64,000 bases of DNA from Podarcis tiliguerta (taxonomy: Eukaryota): the NCBI GenBank assembly GCA_965153285.1, contig OZ229121.1. One strand, 5' to 3'. The number at the start of each line of letters is the position of its first letter. The first letter of the stretch is position 1. The notes under the pieces are model-generated. The model ran no database searches. It was given only the letters and a program-made list of their open reading frames with translations, and was not told the DNA's origin. Made by a program: the position numbers and the translations under genes. Positions 4,351-22,700 of this stretch are shown piece by piece.

Positions 4351-7300
4351 TGAACATGACTGTACCATTTAAAATAAACAAAGTGCCGCACACCACCACA
4401 GAGGCTTGGGACAGCAACAAAGATATCTGTATTTGTAACAAAGATATCTGGATAAAAAGGGATTCTTTACACTTCAGAAGAGAAGAGTCTTAGTGCTCCT
4501 CTTCTTCTCTTCTTCTCCTTCTTCTTCTTCTTCCACCATGTTTTCCACAGATTCAATCGCAAATTCCAAAACTGTAAAATTAAATTCAGGAGACTGTCAA
4601 AACATATTGCTAAATGGAGTGCCTACTCTCCTGGCTTGATTGCAAATGAACTACTGTAAAAACCAATCACTTCTTTTCTTCAAATTAGCAATGGTGTGTG
4701 ATGAGTGAATTTCTCAAAATAAAACCCAGCGGTTAAAAGTCTCTACTTTCCCTACGGAAAACCCAGTCCTTTTAGGAAAGGGAAACGCAAACAATTCCAT
4801 CTGTATTTCCAATTGCACAACCTAATTTACTGCAGACATTCTTCTGTTTACTGTAAACGGGCATATTTCACTACAGAAAACAACATGTTGCAGTGAACAA
4901 GAAATTATCTGCATAGTCTAATCAGATTTAACTCAGAGGCTTGCTGCCCCTCAAATGTCCTGATTAAAATGATAAAACTTTCTCCTGCTGGGTCTGTCAA
5001 TTAAGATGCAAAAGAGCAGAGCTGGTAAGGGGAAGCTTCCTAAGTTGGAAGAGGAAAGTAACAAGGTCACTTTAAGAAAGCCTAGAAGCAGCACATCAAT
5101 CATGTTTCGCTGATGATTAGAACACAAAAGACAGATCTGACAAGCAGATCTGAGCAGGGGGAAAGACCTCACCATTAAGGATGATATGCCTAAAACATCA
5201 CTATGTTCATAATTGCGGGTTATAAAAACCTGAAAGACGTTTTCAGTTAGGAAGGCACCACAGACTGTTCCCATGTTGGTCCAGCAATTTGGCTCCCATG
5301 ACATCATTGCAGAACTGCTTTTGCTATTTAACAGGTTTTCACTGATTTTGCAGGTTGCCCCGAGGGCTTTTATACTGGAAAGGTGGGTTGAAAATAGGGT
5401 TGCCATATTTCGAAAAATAAAAACCAGGAGACATGCTTCCCAAGTTGTTGAGTTTTTTTGTTTTTTTTTTACAAAAATGCCCTAAAAGCGTCATCTTTCA
5501 GAAATCCCCCCCCCCTCCTTTGATATCCCAGTAATGTCCGGGAGAATCAAGATGTATGGCAGCCCTACTGAAAATACCTTTTTTTAAGTAACAATATGAG
5601 TTCTACAAGCTAGAAACTCTGTGTATATAAAGAGAGAGAAAAGGGATGGAGCAACCGTGTATCTTACATGACACTGTTTTAAGGGTACCCTTGAAATTAA
5701 AGTGTGAATGTGACAGATAATGTGTTTGCAAACATACGTATCAGGGCCAGCCCAAGCTCTGAAAAGACACCCAGGAAAATGACACTCCCTTATGTCAATG
5801 GTCCCTGCTAGGCACACTGAGCAGCAGAGCTCTGATCAACACCAGGTGGCTTGGGGAGAGCTGCCATTTGAATTCCCTACAATAACATGGAATTGTGCTC
5901 AGATGGGAGGCATTCTGGGAAATTGAAATGGTGGCTCCAAGCTGCTGAGAAAGTGGGAAGGGGAAGGCAGGGGCTAGCATTATAATCAGGAAAATCAATG
6001 CAATATTCCCCACCTCTGAATGTACCTCGGAAGGGCAGGCAGGTGGGGACTGGTTGAGGGCAGATTGAGATTGGTGGGGCAGCGCCCCATTCATCCTAAT
6101 GGACCATCTTCCACCGTCAGGCCCTTCTGCATGTAAGCCATGTGCTCTATGCCTGAGGTACAGCTTCTCCCCATATGGTTCTATAATACCATTTTGTCTT
6201 TAACTACCTATTCCTTATCTCCAGATTTTGTTTAAACCAGTGTTTCTCAACATTCTCTAGCAGGGAAAATATGTTACATAGGCAACAGATGATACCAACA
6301 GAGAGCGGGGGAAGAGAAGCAAATCTGGCTTTGATTTGTGGAATGCAGAAGGAGAGATGGAGTGCGGCTCCATCCCTGAGCGAAGAGGTCAGGCCTCCCA
6401 AATGTTTTGGGAATGCAATTGCAATTAATCATTTGGCAGCCATTGTTCAGAATCGGAGGTCAACGAGGCCACGGCCAACTGAAACAAAAGCCAGCATGTG
6501 TCCGCACCCAAGTGCTGGAATTCAAGCGGGTCTGCCTCTTTGGGCAAAGGAGGAGGCCAGTCATAAATTTGACGTGCGCCTCCTGTTTTCACTCTGCCAG
6601 GTTAGGGAAACGGGGTGCTTTGATATTTGATCCTATAACCTTTCACCCAACATCTGGCCCTAATCAACATCTCTCTGGGAGAGGAGAAGCATTGGCCTTG
6701 ACAGAAAAGAGGGGGAAAGTGAGCTCTGGAATAGAGGTTGCAATCCACAGCAGGTTCTTCAATCATAGGCGGGGCCCAACGAGGTAGCTTAAGAACATAA
6801 GGAGAGCCCTGCTGGATCCCGTCAATGGCCCATCTAGTCCAACATCCTGTTCTCACAGTGGTCCACCAGATGCCCAGGTATACTACTGTTATAAATGTAC
6901 ATTCCACCAAGGGGAATGCTGGAACAGCTATTGCTTTTGCCGTTCCCCTTGTGAATTCACCAGGGGAAGGGGAAAATGCTCACAATTACTGTTTGAAGTG
7001 GTATGTGAATATTTGAGTCCATCCTTTACTTTGCACCCTTCCCATCAAAGGCATCAAAAACAAACAAACAAAAAAGCTGCAAAACCAGCCAGGGGACAGC
7101 AAATTGGGGGTGGAGGAGGGAGTGAAGTACTCACCTAAGAATACTTGCCAGGAAAACTCCTTGAGCTCTGTGGGAGTTTCTTGCAAGTAAAGGTGATTAA
7201 GGCCTATCCCATCTTTTAAATGATTATTAGAAGCTGCCCATTTCGGGTTCTCTCTCTGTTTCTTATTTTTCCCATCTTAAGTTCAGTTTTCCACATATCC

Positions 7301-9590: not shown

Positions 9591-10728
9591 GCTCAGAACT
9601 TGCTGGATAAACGCAGGACGAATTTCTTCCACAAGAGACAAAGGAGCAAAATCCCAGTGCTGTGGCAATCTCTAAATCCAGAATAATCCCACAGATTAAA
9701 TTTTATGTACTTATTGCACCCTCATCAATGGCGCTACCTAGTGATTCAGGAGTAAATTTAGAATAAATGGAAGTTAAAACACGAGGGGCAAAAATATCCC
9801 TGACAGGTTTCCTCCCCACTCAGGATATTAATTTGAATGAGTGAACTGGGATAGACAATGTGGCGCCCTCCAGATGTTGCTGGAATACAACTCCCATCGT
9901 CCTGCCTGATGCGCCATACCTAGACCGCGTCCTCCCTTTGAAATCCAAGCATCAGTGACTCCTGAATGATTTATATTTTCAGCGTGGAATGCAAGACACC
10001 CTGTAGCCTAGGAGGCTCTTCGGCATGGAACAGTCCTGTGTTTCAGGGAACGTGTGTGAATGACATGCCATCAGTAGTGGGTGTGTTTCTGACATTAATC
10101 TGCCTCTGGTTGATGATTCCACAGGAAAGAGCCATGGGAGGCGTGGGGAACCTTGGCCCTCCTGCTGTTGCTGAACTGCAATTCCCATCAGCCCTTGCAA
10201 GCCTGGCCAATGACCAGGGATGAGTAATGTCCAAAATGGAGTGGCTGCTTTGTTCAGCTGCCTATCCTTGAGTGCGCCTGCAAACAGGCCTAGGCAGCAA
10301 TTTCTGTTCTCTTGCTGCAAGCCACAAGCCTTGATTGGTTAATTATTGCCCATTAACCAGCACTCGTTGCAGCGGCCAAGCCATTAAGCAGGGCAACATA
10401 TGGTTCCTAACAGCGCTATTAACATACCTTTAGGGAGCATTTCCTGAAGCAGCAGGGCATTTCAAGGGGAAGAGAGTGGCTTTGCTTCTTTTTGAAACGA
10501 GCTCACTGGTTCAATGCTTGGGCCCAGATGACAAAAACCCATTTCGCGCCTGCAAACAATAGCAGGTGCCCTTGGCTGAAACAAGCATGTGAACATGCAG
10601 CAGAAGAGCTACATTGGGAGATAATGCCTTGATTTCTCCTGCAATAAATGTGTGGCGAGCAATGATGGACTCAGCTACATTGGTAAAGAAAAAACGATTT
10701 GTATGCGTTTTATATGCGATATATCATT

Positions 10729-10747
10729 TTGCCACCAGATGGTGCTG
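10729..10747 (+). promoter_or_regulatory. Candidate CTCF site
   Basis: TTGCCACCAGATGGTGCTG is close to the CTCF core consensus; TGCGAT upstream at 10715. Confidence 0.45.
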
Positions 10748-13700
10748 TGGAGCTGTGTTTTTCTCTACTTGTTTTCCCTGTTTAAATTTACAACATGTTT
10801 CATTGAAGCGCTTCTTTGAAGTGCCTTCGATCCAGCCTATGTATTTACTGCATGGGGGGAAGGTGTGAAAAAAGTCCAAAGACTGAAAGTTCAAAATTAA
10901 TTGAAAGCACGTATACTCTGCAGATCTTTGGGAAAGAGCAGTTGAAGATGCTTCCCTTTCCTGCCCGCCCCGTTCAGCTTTTAACATGATCTGATTCTGC
11001 TGCCACTCTGCATTTTGATTGATTATTTCTTTGCTGATGTGTTTTGGTTTCATATATTGACATTCTGCAGTACCCTTGGGAATGTGCATGATTAAGAGGT
11101 GGGACATAAATATATATAATAATAATATATAATAATAATTCCTTCACATCTGAATTGTGTCATACTTGGAAAAAAGGATAGCAAACAAAATGCATAAATA
11201 AGAAAATATTCCTGCATTTTCTCTTCTCTTTGTGCACAGATTATCTTCAGGATCAGATCTGAGCACTGCTCTTCTTGCCTTTAACCATCAATGCCCCCAT
11301 TTTTAAAGCAGCAATGCTTGCTCCCCTTAATTACAGAAAACACTGTTTGCAGAACATATCTGATAGTTTATGCTCTACTTCTGTTATTTTACTGACACAG
11401 TTTTCTGTTTTGTGATATATGCAAAACACTTAAGCAATGCAAAAAAGAGGGAACTCTCTTCTGGAATTCTTCAGTCGCAAAAATTCTTAAACCTCTCTGG
11501 GTTTTCTCTTCTGATTATCGTCTCCTTTTCCAACATCTATCTTATTCCTAATCTCTCCATCATGTCAGGCAGATCGTTAATCATGCTGCACATCTGCTTT
11601 GGGTTTCAGGATGATTCTAGTTCAATAAAATATAGTTTCTTAACCCATGTTTTTCTGCTTTGTACTCTGGATTTCTGATAATTTCTTTTGGCATCTCAGA
11701 TTCTATGGAGCCCAGAGTGTATAAAACGTATGTTATCTACACATACTGGTTTCATAAACTGGAATTGTTTCCATATCTGTTTATATAGATTGCACAGATC
11801 CATTATAAATAAGAATTCCATTTGTCACCTTGCAATCCTTTCTTCTAAGGATGGAATACATATATCTGTTCCCTACTGCTCCAGAGCACTGACATCTTAG
11901 CTCAGGGCTGGGCAGTGGCAGCTGGTAACATTTTGATTTCATAGGGCTGCTGTTTTCATCTCAACAGAAATTGCACAGTACTTATTTAGTCACTGTGCAT
12001 GTGCAGAGTGTCATTGTCTCCTCCGCTCTAAATCCCACTCCCCAATTGTTCTCTCCGCATATATTGACAGAGAAACAGCTCCAATGTAAGAGGCCCAAGT
12101 ATGATTTCCAGACAAGATTGACTCCATACCTCTTATTTAGAAATTAAGCCGTGACACACAGCATAAGTTTTCAAAATTTACATCTATGCATCCATTGCCC
12201 TCAAAAAACCTAAACATAACAAACTTCTAAAACACAACAAAGGCTTTCTTTCAGTTGCATGTAGTTTTCCTTCCCCCCAAAATCTAAGTATTCATTATCC
12301 AAAACACTGTTTTCCTCTAAATTAAAAGAACAGAGTATTCCAACCAATAGGGGAAAACGTGATTGTGTCATTTGAGTCAGGATACAACAAAACACACCAG
12401 AAAATATTTGCCATGCATGACTCAGTCCTGAAAATGTGAAGCAACAATCTCTGTTCATGTGCAAAGTTCATCATACCAGAGGGATTGTAGCCAACTCTAT
12501 AATGTCTGAGTTTGGGGAGAATGTTTTCCAGGTTTGGGGATGGACATGAAATCGTATCCAGAAAGGCAAAGAGCCCAAACTATTCACTTCAAAAATTCAC
12601 TAACAAACTCACAAAGAACAAGGGAGAAATAATAGGGAGCAGGGAAGTGGTTTACTGATAAAACAGATCCACATACTTTTTCTGAAAACGAGTCTGGAAA
12701 ACTCTGGAAATACAAATAATCTGGAATTGCAAATGGCCCAGTATCTACCTTACCTGCCCTACTCCACCCTGCAGTAGTTTTTAATGAGTGAATATAGGAA
12801 AATGGTAGATACAGAGCTTATTGCAACACACAAGCCACCCTTTCAATGCCCCAAACGTCTTTTAAAATAAAAATAAAATAAAAATATAGCTATTTATTGT
12901 AGAGACTCACTGTAGTTCACAGTGGTCTTTGAGATGCTCTTGGACTACAATTCCCATAATCCCTGACCATTGCCCTTGCTGGCTGGGTCTGGTGGGAATT
13001 GTACTTCAACAGCATCTGGAAGCCCCCATGTTCCCCAACCCTGCTCTAATGGAAGTGACTGAACTGGACTGCAATTTTGTGCACGCTTAACTGGGGGCAA
13101 GCTACCGTGGGACTAACTTCCGAGGAAGCAAGTCTAGGCTAACACTGTTAAGCTTAGCAATGAAGAGGGCTTTGATGAGAGAGAAGCATGCAGAGCCCTC
13201 TCTAAAGTGTCTTCTTAGGGGTGAGAAGACAACAGTTGGCCGGAGGCTTCTCTCTCCATTCAGCGAGGGATACTCAGCAGCTGCTGTAATCATGCGCCGC
13301 AACTCTTAACATGACCTCATTTAGCTTGATAAATTAACTGAGTCTTGCAAGGCTTTCTTAAGAGAGCAGCAGGATGCTTATGAGTGATGTAAGTACACTT
13401 TATTCCACAGACTTATTTATGTAGGCAGCGGATTCCGAGAGCGTATTTATGGCGCAGACAAATTTGGCTTAGGCAGCTGGAACTCCGTACTTTTTTCGCA
13501 AATAATCACTGGAATTATCACATTAGTTTTGGAAGATGATATGAGTGAAACTGACAGACAGAAGACCTCAGGGCTTAGGAGGCTTAATTTTATCCTAAAA
13601 CCCATCCCCACCAAATGTTTTCAAATTGACATCACAGGCTTCGGGATTATGCGCTATTGGCACTTCCTTGTGAGCAGAGTTGGAAGTGGAAAATAAAACC

Positions 13701-14535: not shown

Positions 14536-16007
14536 AGGGAGGGAGAGCAGCTTTTCCTGCAGTTGTTGGGACCTCGAGAATGACTTGAGAAAGGATGCTG
14601 CCAGCAGATTCCATTTTTTCAGAGCCGTCAGCCAGAAGTCCCTTACTCTGTCATATGCTGATCCGAGGACATTTCAGTCTCCTTACCTTCATTGCCCCTG
14701 CCCTCCACCGCTCGCAGTGTTTTACAAGTTAGTCTTCCCAATAATACATGCAAGTGGGAATTACAAATGAGGCTGGTTCTTAGTATTTTTTTTGCAATAG
14801 GTTATGAAAAGTTACTATATATATGTGTGTGTGTGTGTAACTTTTCATAACCTATTTCATAACCTATATATATATATATATTATGAGTTATATAAAAATG
14901 TGTATGGCATCTATGCATAATCATTTTTTTTTGGCAAGGAACTTTTTCATTTGTTGGTTTAAGTATTTTTCTTAAAACACTCTGTGGAATTGAAGGCTTC
15001 AAAAACATGATCAACAGGTATTCAGTTTTGAGATTTCAGTGCACATTCTAGAAAACAATATACAGCATTCCTTTTCTCAATACAGGCAAGAATGTCAACT
15101 CTGTCCTTCTGCATCAGTAACATCGCCTTCACATTCGTTAAGCAAGACTTCACTGTGGGGTTATTCCATGACAGCTACCACGATTGCTCAGACAATCCTA
15201 TTCACTTTTCCTGGGGTGGACAATTTTCAACCTCCAAGGACAATTCAAGATGCAGGGCCAATTCAGAAACACAACATTCAGGACTAAGACAATTGCCATG
15301 GGCAGGGTATTTCTCCTGAAAAACATATTTAACATTGTATGACGTGAATTGTATTGTACACAAACATTATACACCTTTGTTAGAGGACAACTGTTGCCTC
15401 TAGAATTGTCATCTTCTCTCTTTTTTTGCAGAGTTGTTTTTTCTGCAAGGAGGGGCATTGTTGTCTTCTGAGGTAACGCCTTGCCATCGGCTTATACCTC
15501 AACGCTGGTGAGGGCTGGGTACTTTGCATAGCTCACAGGTGAGTTTGGTCACTCAAGGATAATTCCAACAGCTTGAAATGACTTGAGACTGGGACCCCAG
15601 AACCACCGGCTGAGAGGCATGTCCCCGTTTTCCAAGAAGCTCCTTTGGAAGTTGTTGTTGCTGGTGTACTACAGCTGTGAAGGGACACAGTAAAAGCTTG
15701 CAACAAAAAAGTGGACAAGCCCTGCAGGATTTACCCAAGTGTTATGTCCTAAATCCTGCCCACATTGCCCTCAGACGCATTACTGGAACCACAAACATTT
15801 TACAAACCAATTCTTTCCTTTCTGTTCCAAAAATAGTAGATGCTGCATGTTACTTTAAACGCAGCCCGTGGTATGCTGAATCCCAAGTACTCTGTTCAGT
15901 GATCCAGCAGCTGCTAGGCTCCTTGGATCATGTGTCAGTTGGCTCTAACATGTAGTCCTTGCAGCATCTAAAACAATCTTAGGATAAGCAGTTAAGTTTT
16001 AAAGAAC

Positions 16008-16028
16008 TTTATTTTCAACTTGTTTATT
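16008..16028 (-). terminator. Two AATAAA polyadenylation signals for the SSNA1-like gene
   Basis: TTTATT on + at 16008-16013 and 16023-16028, about 115-135 nt past the stop. Confidence 0.6.
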
Positions 16029-16142
16029 GCTTCCATGATATTCTTTATAAAAAGTAACAATTGATACATAATAAAAACATTAATAAACCCACCAATACAA
16101 GATCAAAGAGTGAAATTTCTTGCATATAACTTTTCACCAAGC

Positions 16143-16526
16143 CTAGTGCTGCGTTTGTTGGAGCCCAAGTGTTTGAATATCCCCAGTCACATTTCTATTT
16201 AGCATTATCGTTTTGTCTAAATTCCCCGTTTCAGCTTTCAAAACATTCAGCAGCATCCTAGAGCTTTCCAAGATCTTCTCATAAGTCAACGCTGCTTCGC
16301 CAAGGACTTCGTCAAGTTTCTTCTGTGCAGCATTTTTCTGTGCTAAGTTTTCACACACACAATCCAGTTGTTTTGTCAGTGTCTCAATTTTATCCTGGAG
16401 CCTATTCTTTTCCTCTTCCGCTTCCCTGATCTGCTTGCTCACTTCTTCTCTTTGCATATACAAGTCTTCTATATGTTTCACAAGTTCGTTATTATAGCCT
16501 TGCAGAACAGCCCCCTGATGAGTCAT
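16143..16526 (-). CDS. SSNA1/NA14-like coiled-coil microtubule-associated protein; intronless paralog (probable retrogene), 127 aa
   Basis: MTHQGAVLQGYNNELVKHIEDL...ENLAQK...YEKILESSRMLLNVLKAETGNLDK aligns without gaps to recalled SSNA1 ([22 protein letters not shown]...[22 protein letters not shown]), about 55% identical by eye; ATG with A at -3; intact to TAG 16145-16143. Confidence 0.88.
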   Translation of the reverse strand: MTHQGAVLQGYNNELVKHIEDLYMQREEVSKQIREAEEEKNRLQDKIETLTKQLDCVCENLAQKNAAQKKLDEVLGEAALTYEKILESSRMLLNVLKAETGNLDKTIMLNRNVTGDIQTLGLQQTQH

Positions 16527-16598
16527 CCTGCTGGCTCCACCCTTCGGAGGAGAAGGAAATGATCCCTGCTTCCACCAGCTGATCTCGCCACCGTCTGC

Positions 16599-16640
16599 CT
16601 GTATTTTATAATTTAAATGGAGGAAAGAAAGAAAAATTGC
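16599..16640 (-). promoter_or_regulatory. 3' splice acceptor in the 5' UTR of the SSNA1-like gene
   Basis: Minus strand reads tttttctttctttcctccatttaaattataaaatacag|GCAGACG, 72 nt upstream of the ATG. Confidence 0.55.
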
Positions 16641-19600
16641 TAAGTGCTTTTGAGCAACACTGTAAAACCAGCACATACATAATGGAAACGTCAATAGCAA
16701 TTGTAGAAAATGTGATTAAGGAAACCATCTGAGTAAGTTTCCAAGTATCCTATTTTGCCATTACTTTAACTTCTTCCACTGACATTCAAGTGGCCAGTGG
16801 TCTTTTCCAAGATGTTATGAAGCTGCTGATATTTTGAGACGGCTCTAAAATGTGTGCACTTAAGTGCTGCTGTGCAAGAAAATGTGTAGATGCACAACTC
16901 CATGTATGAATGATGCAGGGGTGAAATTATATGAATGCATATGCCTTGATAGGCATGGGAGAGGAGCACTGAGGAAGAACAGAATAGGGGAAAGAACTGA
17001 AGGAAAGTTTAATCTCCCCTTGTCCTCCCTGCTTCTCTCACAAGGTTCTCATGCTGCTTTGTTATTGTTGTTGTTGTTAATAAGAAGTCTCCTCCTCCCT
17101 TTGTCCTAGGATAGGGCCATTAAGGTGCTCTCTAGCTATAGGATGGCTTAGAACAGTAAATACACTGGCAACATGTGCACCAGACTATCCAGGATTGATT
17201 TACTGCAGTTTAATTAAGGTTTCTGGGGAGATTTGCAGGGTTTGAGGGTGCTGAGAAGAACCCAAGCCTGCCTAAGCATTTGCTTCCTTACCTCTACAGT
17301 GCCTGCTTAACTTGTACGTTTGCTGGTAACAGAAGGTAATGCACCACTTAGGCTACCTGTACTAGTAGAAGCTCAGCAGTGCTTAACTCCTAAATAAATA
17401 TACTTAGGATAATACAGCAAGTCTCCGGAACGGTTGCCTTAGGATTCTGACCATGGGGTTGAAAAGGAGGGGAGTGAGAAATAGGCCAGCTACCAGAACT
17501 TTTCTGTCTGGAGGGCTCAGGCGTCTAACCTTCGAGGGAGAGGCCCCTTGTGCAACCCACAAGAGTAGTCCCCAAACTCATCCAATCTCAGCCTGCAAAC
17601 AGGGACTCTACTACTTTTGATTTTGTTGCTAGAGGGATCCTCCAGCACAGGCGCCTGCGCAGGAGTAAATTTGGCTTTTGGGAAGCGCAGCTCTTCATGC
17701 GAGCTTGAGGGGAAACGTCCCTCTTTCCTGCACATCCATAAAGGAGAATGGGAGCTTTGCGCTGGCTGCCTTTATTCTCTCTCCCCTCAAAAGCAAGCGG
17801 CGGCGGCGCCGAGCCACCAGTTGGGGGAGATGCCTCCCCGGCAACCCGCCCTCCTTGCTTCGCCTCCGCGCTGCGGGCAGCTGTTTTCCCCCGGACCCAG
17901 AATAGACCAGCGGCCGCCCACGTGCCTCCCAGAATAGCTCCGTTGTCACCCTCCTTCCTGCCGCGGATCGCTCGGAATGAGGCGCCGGGAGGGGGCGGGG
18001 CCCGCAGTAGCCCCTGGGCACCTCGGCGCGGGGACCGCGCAGGAAGGGAAGCGAGCACCTCCGCGGCTGCGCACTGCGAGCATTGAAGCCGCGGCGGCCC
18101 TTACTTCTTCCCCTTCCGCAAGCAAACGCCCGGCGGGTCGATGCGGCGTCAGCCCCGCCCAAGTCAAGCGTTGCGCGGGCCGCGCGGCGCTTACTTGTTT
18201 GGAAGGAAAGGCGCCCTTGGGGCGATCTCTTGCTTAATAAGCCCGCACGGGGCAGTAGGCTCTGCAAAGGCTCGCTCGGAAATCTGTGCCCCGCTTCAGC
18301 TCGATGGGGCTTGGAGTAAATCCCATTCAGGTCCATAGGCGCTCACTCTCGGGCAAGCGGGATGGGATCGCGCCTTAAGTGCCCACAGAGGACTCTAGGA
18401 GAAGCGTGCCTATTGCCTACCTAGTTACCTGGGAACACGCATAACTGAACGCGTTTTACTCCTGGATAGGCATGCAAACAGGACCTTTCCGTGTCCCCAC
18501 GCCAGAAGGCTTTCCTTGGAGATTCAAACTATTGTACAATCTACACACAGTGCAGAAATGGTTCTGGTGACGTTTTGTTTTAAATTACAGGGGCTTGGAC
18601 TAGATGACCTTCCAACTCTATAATTCTACGAAAGTCCCATTCATAGCTACATTTTTCTAGTTCTCCATCCTCACCTTCGGTAACGCCCACTAAATAACTC
18701 CGGTAACTTCGGCTTCGTCGGAGATGGAACAAAACGCGTTTCAGTTATCCCAGCAGAGAACGTTCAGCGGATACAGGAACGAAAGACAAACTCCAAGCCA
18801 CCTAGCTTGAATTTATCCACCACTTTACGAGCGTATTTCCGGAGCTCATTCTCGGAGGATTAAGATGGGGGGGGGGCGTTTCTCCTTCCCCTTGCGGAAA
18901 TAGTCGAAGTGGAGATAGCGATCCGTGACGGAGACAGCCGGTGCCGCCCGAATGCGAGGGCTGCAGGCTGCACGGAGACCACCGACGTTTTCCGAAACTG
19001 CAGCGACCGCACAGAGAGCGAAGAAGGGAGGCTAAAAACACACACACACAAACCCAGGCGAGGGCTTGTCGGAGCCTGACGGAAATGGCCGATGTTTCCC
19101 GAAGGAAACCGCCTTAGCATCCGGAAGGGAGGAGGCGGGGCATAGACTTAAGAAAGAGGGTGGGTTCAAAAAAGAAAAAAGGACTGGATGGAATGGGAGG
19201 AGCTTTGGCGGAAAGAGCCGATATCAGCCGACGTTAAGCGAAGGCGGCGGCGTCCGAGTTTCCCGGATGTAGTCGGACGGCGGTAGTGTTGGGAGCTGGA
19301 GCTGTAGCTGAAGGGAGGGGGGAGGAGGTGTTGGCGGCGGCGGCGGAGGGCGAGCGAGCGAGCGAAGGCGGCCAGTGGCAGCAGCGGAGGGGACGCGGCC
19401 GCCTTGTGTCTCCCACGCCCCGCTGTGCGCGTGTGTCCGTCCTGCGGGGGCGCCTCTCCTTCTCGCTGGTGCGGAGAGGAGGAGATGGGCCCGTGAGCGC
19501 TGCTTCCCCTCACAGCCGAGCTGCCTGAGCCGCCCCTCCTCCGCCTCCTCCTCCCTCCCTCCCCCTCCTCCTCCTCCTCTTCCCTGTCCCCGGTCGGAGC

Positions 19601-19688
19601 GCTGCCTCCCCCTCCCCCCTCGGCGGCGCCCGTGGCCCGGCCGCGCCCTCCTGGTCCCCTCAGTCTCTCACACACAGGCCGGGCATTG

Positions 19689-19729
19689 ATGGTAATGTAT
19701 GCGAGGAATAAGCAAAGACTCAATGATGG
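19689..19729 (+). CDS. WAC: WAC coding exon 1 ([14 protein letters not shown])
   Basis: ATG 19689; GG|gtaaat donor; 41 nt. Confidence 0.95.
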
Positions 19730-22700
19730 GTAAATAACCCCCTTTCTCGTTCCGCCCTCCTCCCGTCTTACTCTCTCTCTTCTCTCTCTCTTTTTCCTAC
19801 CCCCCCCCCCTCAATACCAACGGCCAGTAACGGTCGCTCGCTAACGTAAAGTCTTTTTCTCCTCTCTTTTCCAGCTGTCACGACCGCAAGGGGGACTCGC
19901 AGCCCTACCAGGTACCGACTTCTTCGCCCGCCGCAGCCCCACACACCGATAGGCCCCTGCGGCGGCGGCGGCAGTAACTGGAGTGTGGGAGGGCGAGCGA
20001 AACTACTCGAGCGCAGGCCTCGGCCGCCGCTGCAGGCCGCGGGGGAGGGGAGCCAACCGCTTCCCTTCGCTCTGCTCCGAGCGCGGCGGGCCGGGAGGGG
20101 GCAAGGGGGCGGCGGCGGCGGCTCTTGCTCTCTCTCTTAGCCCCGCGACCGCGAGGGCTTGAGCGCGAGCTGAGGCGGCGAGAGGCGCTTGGCGGCGGGG
20201 CAAGGAAGCGAGAGGCCTAGGCCCGATGCGGGCCGCAGGAGGCGGAGGGCGGCATTGTTTTTTCTTTTTTTCCTTTCCCCCCGAGCGAAACCCATGGGAT
20301 GGCGGTAAGTGGCCGGAACCCGAGTCCGAAAAGGTTTCCCGAGTGCCGCTGACCGTCTTCCCTTCCCTTAGGAGACGAAATAGGAGCCGGGATAGATTCT
20401 AGGCCTTGGGCTTGTAGTAAAGCCCGAAGGGAATTCTAGTTCCTCAAACCCTTTCTGTCAACTGAGAAAACTTTAAATTGGGACAGTGTTGAAGGTACCC
20501 CTGAAGAAATTTGGGAAATGGCCGGTGTGCAGCAGTGTGTGTGTGTGGAAAACATTTGAGGTTTTCCCTTTGTCATCTCCCCAGTGTTAAAAGGATTGGG
20601 AGGGCTGGAGGTGTAAATGTGGTCATTTACAGTGGCTTATTTGACCACTACACTTATATACCTGAGTGATCAGATGAAAGAGGCAGCTTTGACAACTGGA
20701 GGCTGCAGTCAGTGACAGCACATCTAATGTAAACATTCATCACACAGCCTTGTGAAAAGGGGCAGATGGAGAGAGGCCCTGTTGTGTTTCGTATAACACA
20801 AGGTGGTGTGGATGCTACAAAGCTGCACATTCCACTCGTACTACTACAAAATCTATCAAGCCCTTTGATTCTTTTGCCAGAAATCTCCCCGCTCTTTAAA
20901 GTGTGTAACAATTAATCTCAGTTCATAGTGGTACCACTGGTTAACTTTTACTATTTGGTTAGATTGTGTGGGATATATTTTTAAGGGGGTAAATGGAGAG
21001 GATATGTTATTGAAACTGGTATCAAATGCCTTAAAGATTTTTCAGTGTCACCTGTATATGGTAAAAGGTATTCTCCATTTAGTAAATAAATAGAAACATC
21101 CTCCATCCTGCAGATGAAATAATTCTGTTGGACTGTATGCATAGTCCAAGGTGTTTCAGCCAAGGTGGTCCTTAAGACTTATTTGAGACTAGTCTCCCAT
21201 TAAACACAATGAAATATACATAGTTATGATGTAGCACATCAAAAATGAGCTTGACTTGGTTGAAGATAGGCATCGTGTTAATTGTACTACTCTGAATAAA
21301 TCCCAATACTGTATTGGAAATAGAATGCTTGTAATAGATTGGAATTAGGGTTGAAAAACCCAGAATTACTTGCTATTAAGTTTGTAAAATGACACAGCAC
21401 TAGTTAGGATCTAGACAATTGTGAAACTAGTTCTATGTCTTAAGAGGATTTCTAGGCTTGATTTATTTTGGACAGCAGCTTCTCCATGCTGCATGGCAAA
21501 CTGTTTAAAAAAATATATTTCAAAATCTGTACCTGTTATTTCTTTCAGGCTCTTAAATACTCATCAAAGAGTCACCCCAGTGGTGGTGATCACCGGCATG
21601 ACAAGATGCGAGACACCACAGACCCTTCACCACCAAATAAAATGTTGCGGCGATCTGATAGCCCTGAAAACAAGTATGGTGACAACACTGGACACAGTAA
21701 AGCTAAAAGCATGCATACTCACAGAGTTAGAGAAAGGGATGGTGGTGAGTTAAACTTTAACTGATTTGTATTCAAAATACTGCTAGTAATTGAAATAAAT
21801 CTTGCACCAAAACAAAGCACATTCATTGAGGTGAAGAATTTACCTCACCATTATTTCAGTTCATTCACAACGCTGCCACAGGTTCCGTATCCCTGTGTTA
21901 GGGGGCTTTAGACCTGGCTGCTTTTGTTGTCTAGTCAGGACGGCTTCATAAACCTGGGCTTTTTGTAGAAACTGCCCACCAGTGCAATCTAGCATGGTGG
22001 TGTTTGAAGGAAATGATACTGTGTCTTTTGGTAGGCAGGCCTTCATGTGCCTCATATAAAATTTGTTCTTCCCGATAAGTACAGTTTACAAAAGAGACAG
22101 TGTAGTGTAATGGCCCTGTACTGGAGGTATCTGGCTTCAGATACCCTTACTCAAGCTTAAAGCTTGCTGGATGGTCTTGGGAAGCTACACATCTCACTCA
22201 GCCAAACCTTGCATTCAGGGAAATTATGAAGATAATGGGGTTTACCATAAATACTCTGAAAAGAGCTATATGTCGAAAGATAGGGATACAAATGTTATGA
22301 ATAAAATAAAGTGAACAATTAGTGAAGTAAACAACATATAAAACAAATTTTTAATGCAGTGAGATAACACAGTTCTTGTGTCTTGGTTTTATTAAACAAA
22401 ATTTATATACCATGTTATTGTAATAAAACCTATTACGTAGTTATTTGAGATTTGCAAGTATAGAAATAACAGTAATTCCATGAAGCATTTTCTTTCATGC
22501 TAAGGCTATTACAAATCAGCATTTAAGTTTCTTGGGACAGTGAGGAGGTTTTTGTTTTTGACAAATTATCATGTTGGGTATCCTTACTGTCACACAGCTA
22601 TCATATTGTTGTGGTTAAATGCTCTGATAATGACTGCACCCTAGTGCTATAGAAGAAGAAACTTTTCAGGTTCTGTTATATTTCATATTCGCCACTGCAC

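Follow-up and report, generated by a model that had tools for sequence, protein, structure and literature searches.

The sequence analysed here, referred to in full as the window, is a 64,000-nucleotide stretch of Podarcis tiliguerta DNA (contig OZ229121.1). Its minus strand carries the coding sequence of a WAC-linked SSNA1 paralog, an uninterrupted run of 127 codons at 16526-16146. According to the open reading frame list and its translation, the start codon ATG occupies 16526-16524 and the stop codon TAG 16145-16143, giving a product of 127 aa; the start codon lies in the context GCCAGCAGGATGA, with an A at -3. Two AATAAA polyadenylation signals are found on the same strand at 16028-16023 and 16013-16008, close to the points at which transcript contigs end, and a splice acceptor (...aaaatacag/GCAGACGG) at 16598/16597 is used by those contigs. 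The first-pass annotation of this DNA had described an intact SSNA1 paralog with an intronless coding region, an unbroken 127-aa frame on the minus strand, an A at -3, an upstream acceptor, and two AATAAA signals. All of these are present, and the whole coding sequence lies inside one mRNA exon. Elsewhere in the window, the GC-rich kilobase 1001-2000 (GC 0.576) holds a 165-aa minus-strand ORF at 1535-2032 that is rich in proline, serine, and glutamate; a Pfam scan of this ORF and of the ORFs at 4954-5406 and 10727-11107 gave no match.

A joint between 16597 and 18674 is found in transcript-like contigs of runs X1, X6, and X13, which represent three studies and two close relatives. These are assembled contigs from relatives about 95% identical to the window, and their RNA nature is a classification guess that is backed by the canonical splice joint. 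The 2076 nt skipped by the contigs have CT..AC ends on the plus strand, which correspond to GT..AG on the minus strand, and the contig of the DNA-like run X19 is colinear over 15700-18624 and lacks the joint. On the minus strand, non-coding exon 1 extends from 18674 to at least 19250 in the contigs, with the X6 contig reaching about 52 nt further, to about 19302. It is followed by a 5' UTR intron of 2076 nt (18673-16598; donor GAAG/gtgagg, acceptor atacag/GCAG) and by exon 2 (16597 to about 16020), which comprises 71 nt of 5' UTR, the coding sequence, and the 3' UTR. Contig ends fall at 16022 or 16019, with one contig extending to 15934. Exon 1 contains three upstream ATGs, each terminating within the exon, and in the frame of the coding sequence it carries a stop codon six codons ahead of the junction, so that the 127-aa product has no N-terminal extension. 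The WAC-linked SSNA1 copy is a real, transcribed gene, and its present form is that of a two-exon gene in which a 2.1-kb intron separates a non-coding exon from one that holds the entire coding sequence and the polyadenylation signals.

Two further segments of the 5' UTR intron deserve mention. One X6 contig (depth 2.9) covers 17789-17949 on the minus strand, and this segment resembles the extension at the N terminus of gene model P0002 from Rhineura floridana (TTxLFWEARGRPxVYS...QLPAARR). It could represent an alternative first exon, retained intronic RNA, or a conserved promoter-proximal element. The other segment, about 45 nt at 18584-18628, is a piece of a high-copy interspersed repeat; its word depth in the DNA-like run is about 4000 vs. 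about 90, and numerous short contigs carry it between unrelated flanks.

WAC lies on the plus strand. The coding part of its exon 1 occupies 19689-19729, with the ATG at 19689 and a gt directly after the exon; a small exon follows from 19875, and a third, encoding ...RERDGG, lies at about 21.5-21.75 kb. A CpG island at 17500-20500 (GC 0.49-0.64, CpG observed/expected 0.69-1.06) covers exon 1 of both genes. The paralog exon 1 at 19250 is less than 450 nt from the WAC ATG, and the end of the X6 contig brings the distance to at most about 390 nt, which places the paralog and WAC head-to-head in one CpG island. The island is presumably the bidirectional promoter region of the two genes, and we infer that the paralog shares its promoter with WAC. 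A head-to-head arrangement with WAC had been read from the DNA letters at the outset, and the contigs bear it out: WAC runs on the plus strand, the 5' exon of the paralog is inside the WAC CpG island, and minus-strand transcription appears as spliced contigs in three studies of close relatives.

The encoded protein is a member of the SSNA1 family. In a phmmer search against solved structures, residues 10-99 matched C. elegans SSNA-1 (9dsm, 9dsm_A) at E = 1.2e-7, and annotated sauropsid SSNA1 proteins, all with precomputed PF27720, match the window protein at E values of 1e-30 to 1e-71; these matches together exclude chance resemblance. A Pfam-A scan with a Pfam copy that does not hold PF27720 returned only sub-threshold coiled-coil noise. 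A large protein database contains the Podarcis muralis 'microtubule nucleation factor SSNA1', at 98% identity, and proteins of 13 other squamates at 61-79% identity, as well as those of turtles and birds at about 63% with lengths of 114-115 aa. The window protein in its exact form was absent from the protein collection searched. Identity to canonical SSNA1 amounts to 52% for Lacerta, 50-51% for gibbon, and 54.5% for P. muralis. The alignment with the canonical protein is gapless over residues 1-113 at 50-55% identity, in keeping with the gapless alignment at about 55% that had been estimated initially; the distinct C-terminal tail noted at the same time is also real, as the sequence differs from the canonical tail from about residue 104 and is 10-13 residues longer.

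Across the alignment with canonical SSNA1, 37 residues are invariant, and they cluster in an N-terminal stretch, QGAxLQxYNNELVK, and a C-terminal stretch, YxKILxSSxxLLxVLK. Residues 9-22 and 89-104 of C. elegans SSNA-1 form triple-stranded junctions for fibril assembly and microtubule binding (PMC12350680). With the +3 offset of the 9dsm phmmer alignment, these segments correspond to window residues 12-25 and 92-107, and both gene types are invariant at N12, N13, E14, L15, V16, K17, E20, and L22, and at L92, L93, V95, L96, E99, and L103. The key worm residues R18 and Y97 were considered as functional markers and set aside as uninformative, since canonical vertebrate SSNA1 also lacks them (PMC12350680).

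AlphaFold2 predicts a single helix from residue 3 to about residue 110 with pLDDT above 90 (96-98 over most of it), and residues 111-127 have a pLDDT of 49-60. In this prediction, the window protein fits the SSNA1 shape of one continuous helix with a short low-confidence C-terminal tail. When modeled in complex with the canonical SSNA1 of Podarcis lilfordi (P0089), it forms an antiparallel staggered coiled coil over residues 15-82, in which residue i pairs with about 97-i, a geometry like that published for C. elegans SSNA-1 (PMC12350680). The heterodimer model scores 0.61, a mark attained by 51 of 78 complexes with solved structures and by 2 of 108 mismatched pairs and one that family likeness alone may be enough to pass; the best control scores 0.00, at least 98% of the contacts are shared between runs, and the partner pLDDT is 86. 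It is possible that the WAC-linked copy co-assembles with canonical SSNA1, and the model makes this a reasonable hypothesis. Given the retention of the N- and C-terminal junction segments, the most likely role of the WAC-linked protein is that of a coiled coil of the SSNA1 type that assembles with itself at centrioles, cilia, or microtubules. In comparison with canonical SSNA1/NA14/DIP13, the window copy is alike in length class, in its single long coiled-coil helix, in its gapless alignment, and in its terminal segments. It differs in being only 50-57% identical to the canonical protein of the same species, in its rewritten central heptads (QLDCVCENLAQKNAAQKKLD in the window, KLSRVNESLARKMASRNEFD in the canonical protein), its longer low-confidence tail, its intronless coding sequence, its location on another chromosome, and the faster evolution of its squamate copies.

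Searches with the bird protein and with alligator SSNA1 reveal a separate canonical SSNA1 of about 117 aa in many sauropsids. It is found in Podarcis muralis, P. lilfordi, P. raffonei, Lacerta agilis, Zootoca vivipara, Anolis, and Sceloporus, as well as in geckos, skinks, snakes, turtles, tuatara, and alligators. The lacertid canonical proteins measure 115-139 aa, are 74% identical to primate SSNA1, and are encoded on contigs other than those of the WAC-type copy, by which we mean the counterparts of the window gene. In a comparison within species, the two types are 54-63% identical (54.5% in P. muralis), and they lie on different chromosome-sized contigs in Podarcis, Sceloporus, Anolis, Hemicordylus, Heteronotia, Eublepharis, and Dermochelys. 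The contigs of the WAC-type and canonical copies measure 63.5 Mb vs. 30.4 and 51.0 Mb in P. muralis, 170 vs. 51.8 Mb in Sceloporus, 171.7 vs. 16.6 Mb in Hemicordylus, 120 vs. 41 Mb in Anolis, and 272.7 vs. 26.4 Mb in Dermochelys. Because the canonical copy coexists with it there, the WAC-linked copy is a true SSNA1 paralog, and a second SSNA1, in squamates and turtles. The first-pass annotation had expected a second SSNA1 in sauropsids at large. That expectation holds for squamates and turtles, in which canonical SSNA1 is also present, and may not hold for birds, in which the WAC-type copy is possibly the sole SSNA1.

The WAC-type ORF is undisrupted in at least 14 squamates, with lizards and snakes among the carriers of the gene, in numerous turtles, and in hundreds of bird entries. 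The protein databases searched contain no intact WAC-type copy from mammals, including monotremes, or from amphibians, and none was seen in sharks, ray-finned fishes, or lobe-finned fishes in the protein database searches. The 78-aa UniProt 'SSNA1' entries (46-48% identity) were considered as a further gene and rejected; they represent the same intronless gene with a spurious internal intron.

In an IQ-TREE tree of 75 proteins and 117 columns, rooted on Lingula, the window protein groups with every WAC-type copy of squamates, turtles, and birds in a single clade (100/99), whose stem measures 0.41. The clade shares the derived residues V7, Q25, QLxCVCE, LDxxLAE, and SSR. As a single clade unites the squamate, turtle, and bird copies, the gene predates the split between lepidosaurs and the turtle-bird lineage, and by this tree it is older than the crown group of reptiles alive today. 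Without constraints, the tree puts the WAC-type clade outside all vertebrate canonical SSNA1, a placement that we read as long-branch attraction typical for a stem of this length. The AU test does not reject a constraint that groups it with all amniote canonical proteins (p-AU 0.19), and one that joins it with the sauropsid canonical proteins only costs 9.9 log-likelihood units (p-AU 0.054, borderline). Such protein trees are compatible with an origin on either side of the split from mammals.

We consider it likely that the gene in the window is functional, that it descends from an SSNA1 (NA14/DIP13) retrocopy that landed upstream of WAC before the divergence of reptiles and birds, and that it is transcribed from the WAC CpG island. 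Under this proposal, a processed SSNA1 mRNA would have been retroposed upstream of WAC before living reptiles and birds diverged. The retrocopy would then have captured antisense transcription from the WAC CpG island, gaining a new 5' exon and intron, and a burst of sequence change would have been followed by long purifying selection. For the parent gene, introns are documented in the mouse, where Ssna1 uses alternative 5' splice sites (PMC4222953); the coding sequence in the window is uninterrupted within its single mRNA exon. No A-rich tract that could be a poly(A) remnant was found past the 3' end of the gene, and no flanking direct repeats that could be target-site duplications were found around it. 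Their absence is not decisive, since neither would be expected to persist over some 280 million years or longer.

Surveys of mammalian retrogenes describe a class of functional copies that take over the CpG-island or bidirectional promoter of a neighbor and acquire an intron in the 5' UTR. The lizard gene resembles these promoter-capturing retrogenes in several respects: its coding sequence occupies one exon, its first exon is new and non-coding, an intron interrupts the 5' UTR, transcription begins in the CpG island of its host, the ORF is long-conserved, and pN/pS is low. It differs from them in being much older than most, as it is common to squamates, turtles, and birds, and in that the WAC-linked copy may have replaced its parent in birds.

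It is also conceivable that the gene is not a retrocopy but an old duplicate made at the DNA level, such as an ohnolog, that shed its coding introns and was lost in all but sauropsids. In favor of such a history, the clade lies outside all vertebrate canonical SSNA1 in the free tree, and 9.9 log-likelihood units (p-AU 0.054) are lost on grouping it with sauropsid canonical copies. However, that placement follows the long stem (0.41), as is typical of long-branch attraction, and the AU test does not exclude a grouping with all amniote canonical copies (p-AU 0.19). A DNA-level duplicate would further need to have shed all its introns and to have vanished independently from sharks, ray-finned fishes, lobe-finned fishes, amphibians, and mammals, and the protein database searches showed no such copy in any of these groups. 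We therefore regard this history as improbable.

A related proposal concerns mammals, in which human WAC-AS1 is a divergent lncRNA at the WAC promoter. If the gene arose in the amniote ancestor, mammalian WAC-AS1 could be its decayed non-coding remnant, as the first-pass annotation proposed. The lizard transcript, by its contigs, and human WAC-AS1 occupy equivalent positions and the same orientation, each being divergent from WAC, and the AU test leaves room for an origin on the amniote stem (p-AU 0.19). The two differ in that the lizard transcript encodes a conserved protein. Weighing against descent, no intact WAC-type protein of a mammal or monotreme was found in protein databases, and divergent lncRNAs emerge readily at CpG promoters that never had a coding gene. 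Neutral decay over more than 300 million years would not be expected to leave a remnant, and we think such descent an unlikely account of WAC-AS1.

Selection on the coding sequence bears on a third alternative, according to which the locus is a dead processed pseudogene whose ORF is intact by chance and whose transcripts are antisense promoter noise from WAC. In its favor, CpG-island promoters often yield divergent non-coding transcripts, and exon 1 carries three upstream ATGs. However, the transcript contig of organism A, a sister species, differs from the window by 12 listed coding changes, of which 9 are synonymous and 3 non-synonymous. These give pS 0.116 and pN 0.0099 over 77.3 synonymous and 303.7 non-synonymous sites, and thus a pN/pS of about 0.085, a ratio that rests on the 12 listed substitutions and leaves out one further X1 difference in exon 2. 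Under neutrality, the probability of at least 9 synonymous changes among 12 is below 1e-4. The three amino acid differences of the organism A contig are identical to those of the P. muralis protein. An ORF kept open in at least 14 squamates as well as in turtles and birds, together with a spliced transcript and rightly placed polyadenylation signals, also speaks against a dead copy, which we hold to be very improbable. The low pN/pS and the intact ORF in all three groups uphold the initial view that the gene is old and under purifying selection. The squamate WAC-type copies diverge about 1.5-2 times faster than the canonical ones (65% vs. 80% identity between Podarcis and Anolis), and those of birds and turtles are conserved like the canonical protein (83% vs. 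84%). The faster squamate divergence could reflect a relaxed or changed function.

The least credible alternative, that the WAC-adjacent gene is the relocated sole SSNA1 ortholog of the lizard and not a paralog, can draw on the RefSeq name 'SSNA1' for the WAC-type copies of P. muralis and Anolis and on birds, which show WAC-type SSNA1 only in the database searches, but it is refuted for lacertids by the separate canonical protein on other contigs in the five lacertids named above and by an identity of only 54.5% between the two P. muralis types. RefSeq and Ensembl hold gene models for dozens of species, under inconsistent names. The WAC-type copy is called 'SSNA1' in P. muralis, Anolis, Phalacrocorax, and Colius, and 'SSNA1-like' or 'SSNA1 homolog' in most others, and it is the canonical copies of P. 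muralis that carry the RefSeq name 'SSNA1-like'. The WAC-type gene is already in public annotations and is not new to databases. A full-text literature search returned no paper on a sauropsid SSNA1 paralog or on its link to WAC.

With the retrogene origin as our preferred reading, the distribution of the two types raises a further point about archosaurs. Among the best 120 matches of either search, one with a bird query and one with an alligator query, no canonical SSNA1 of a bird was found, and the matches extended to invertebrates. No WAC-type protein was seen in crocodilians in the protein database searches, in which tuatara showed the canonical type alone. As judged from these absences in protein databases, the archosaur pattern looks complementary, with the WAC-type alone in birds and the canonical type alone in alligators. 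We tentatively suggest, with less than even confidence, that the WAC-linked retrogene is the only surviving SSNA1 of birds and that the intron-containing parent was lost there, that alligators show the reverse, and that squamates and turtles keep both. If so, a retrocopy about 300 million years old would carry an essential centriole or microtubule function in birds.

SSNA1 is regarded as a deeply conserved factor of centrioles and microtubules that exists in a single copy; reptiles appear to have two SSNA1 genes. Because RefSeq names swap between species, orthology tables are affected, and so is the interpretation of SSNA1 experiments in chicken or lizards. The locus would be a clean and very old example of a retrogene with a captured bidirectional CpG-island promoter. 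It may also be viewed as a natural experiment in which the terminal junction segments were frozen and the central heptads and tail rewritten.

Finally, we note that P. muralis has two canonical-type entries, P0092 and P0227, which are identical at 138 of 139 positions and lie on contigs of 30.4 Mb and 51.0 Mb; in other lacertids, a 47-51 Mb contig carries the canonical gene. Parts of the Z chromosome of lacertids share homology with chicken chromosome 17 and human 9q34, and P0092 and P0227 may be the Z and W copies of the canonical gene.
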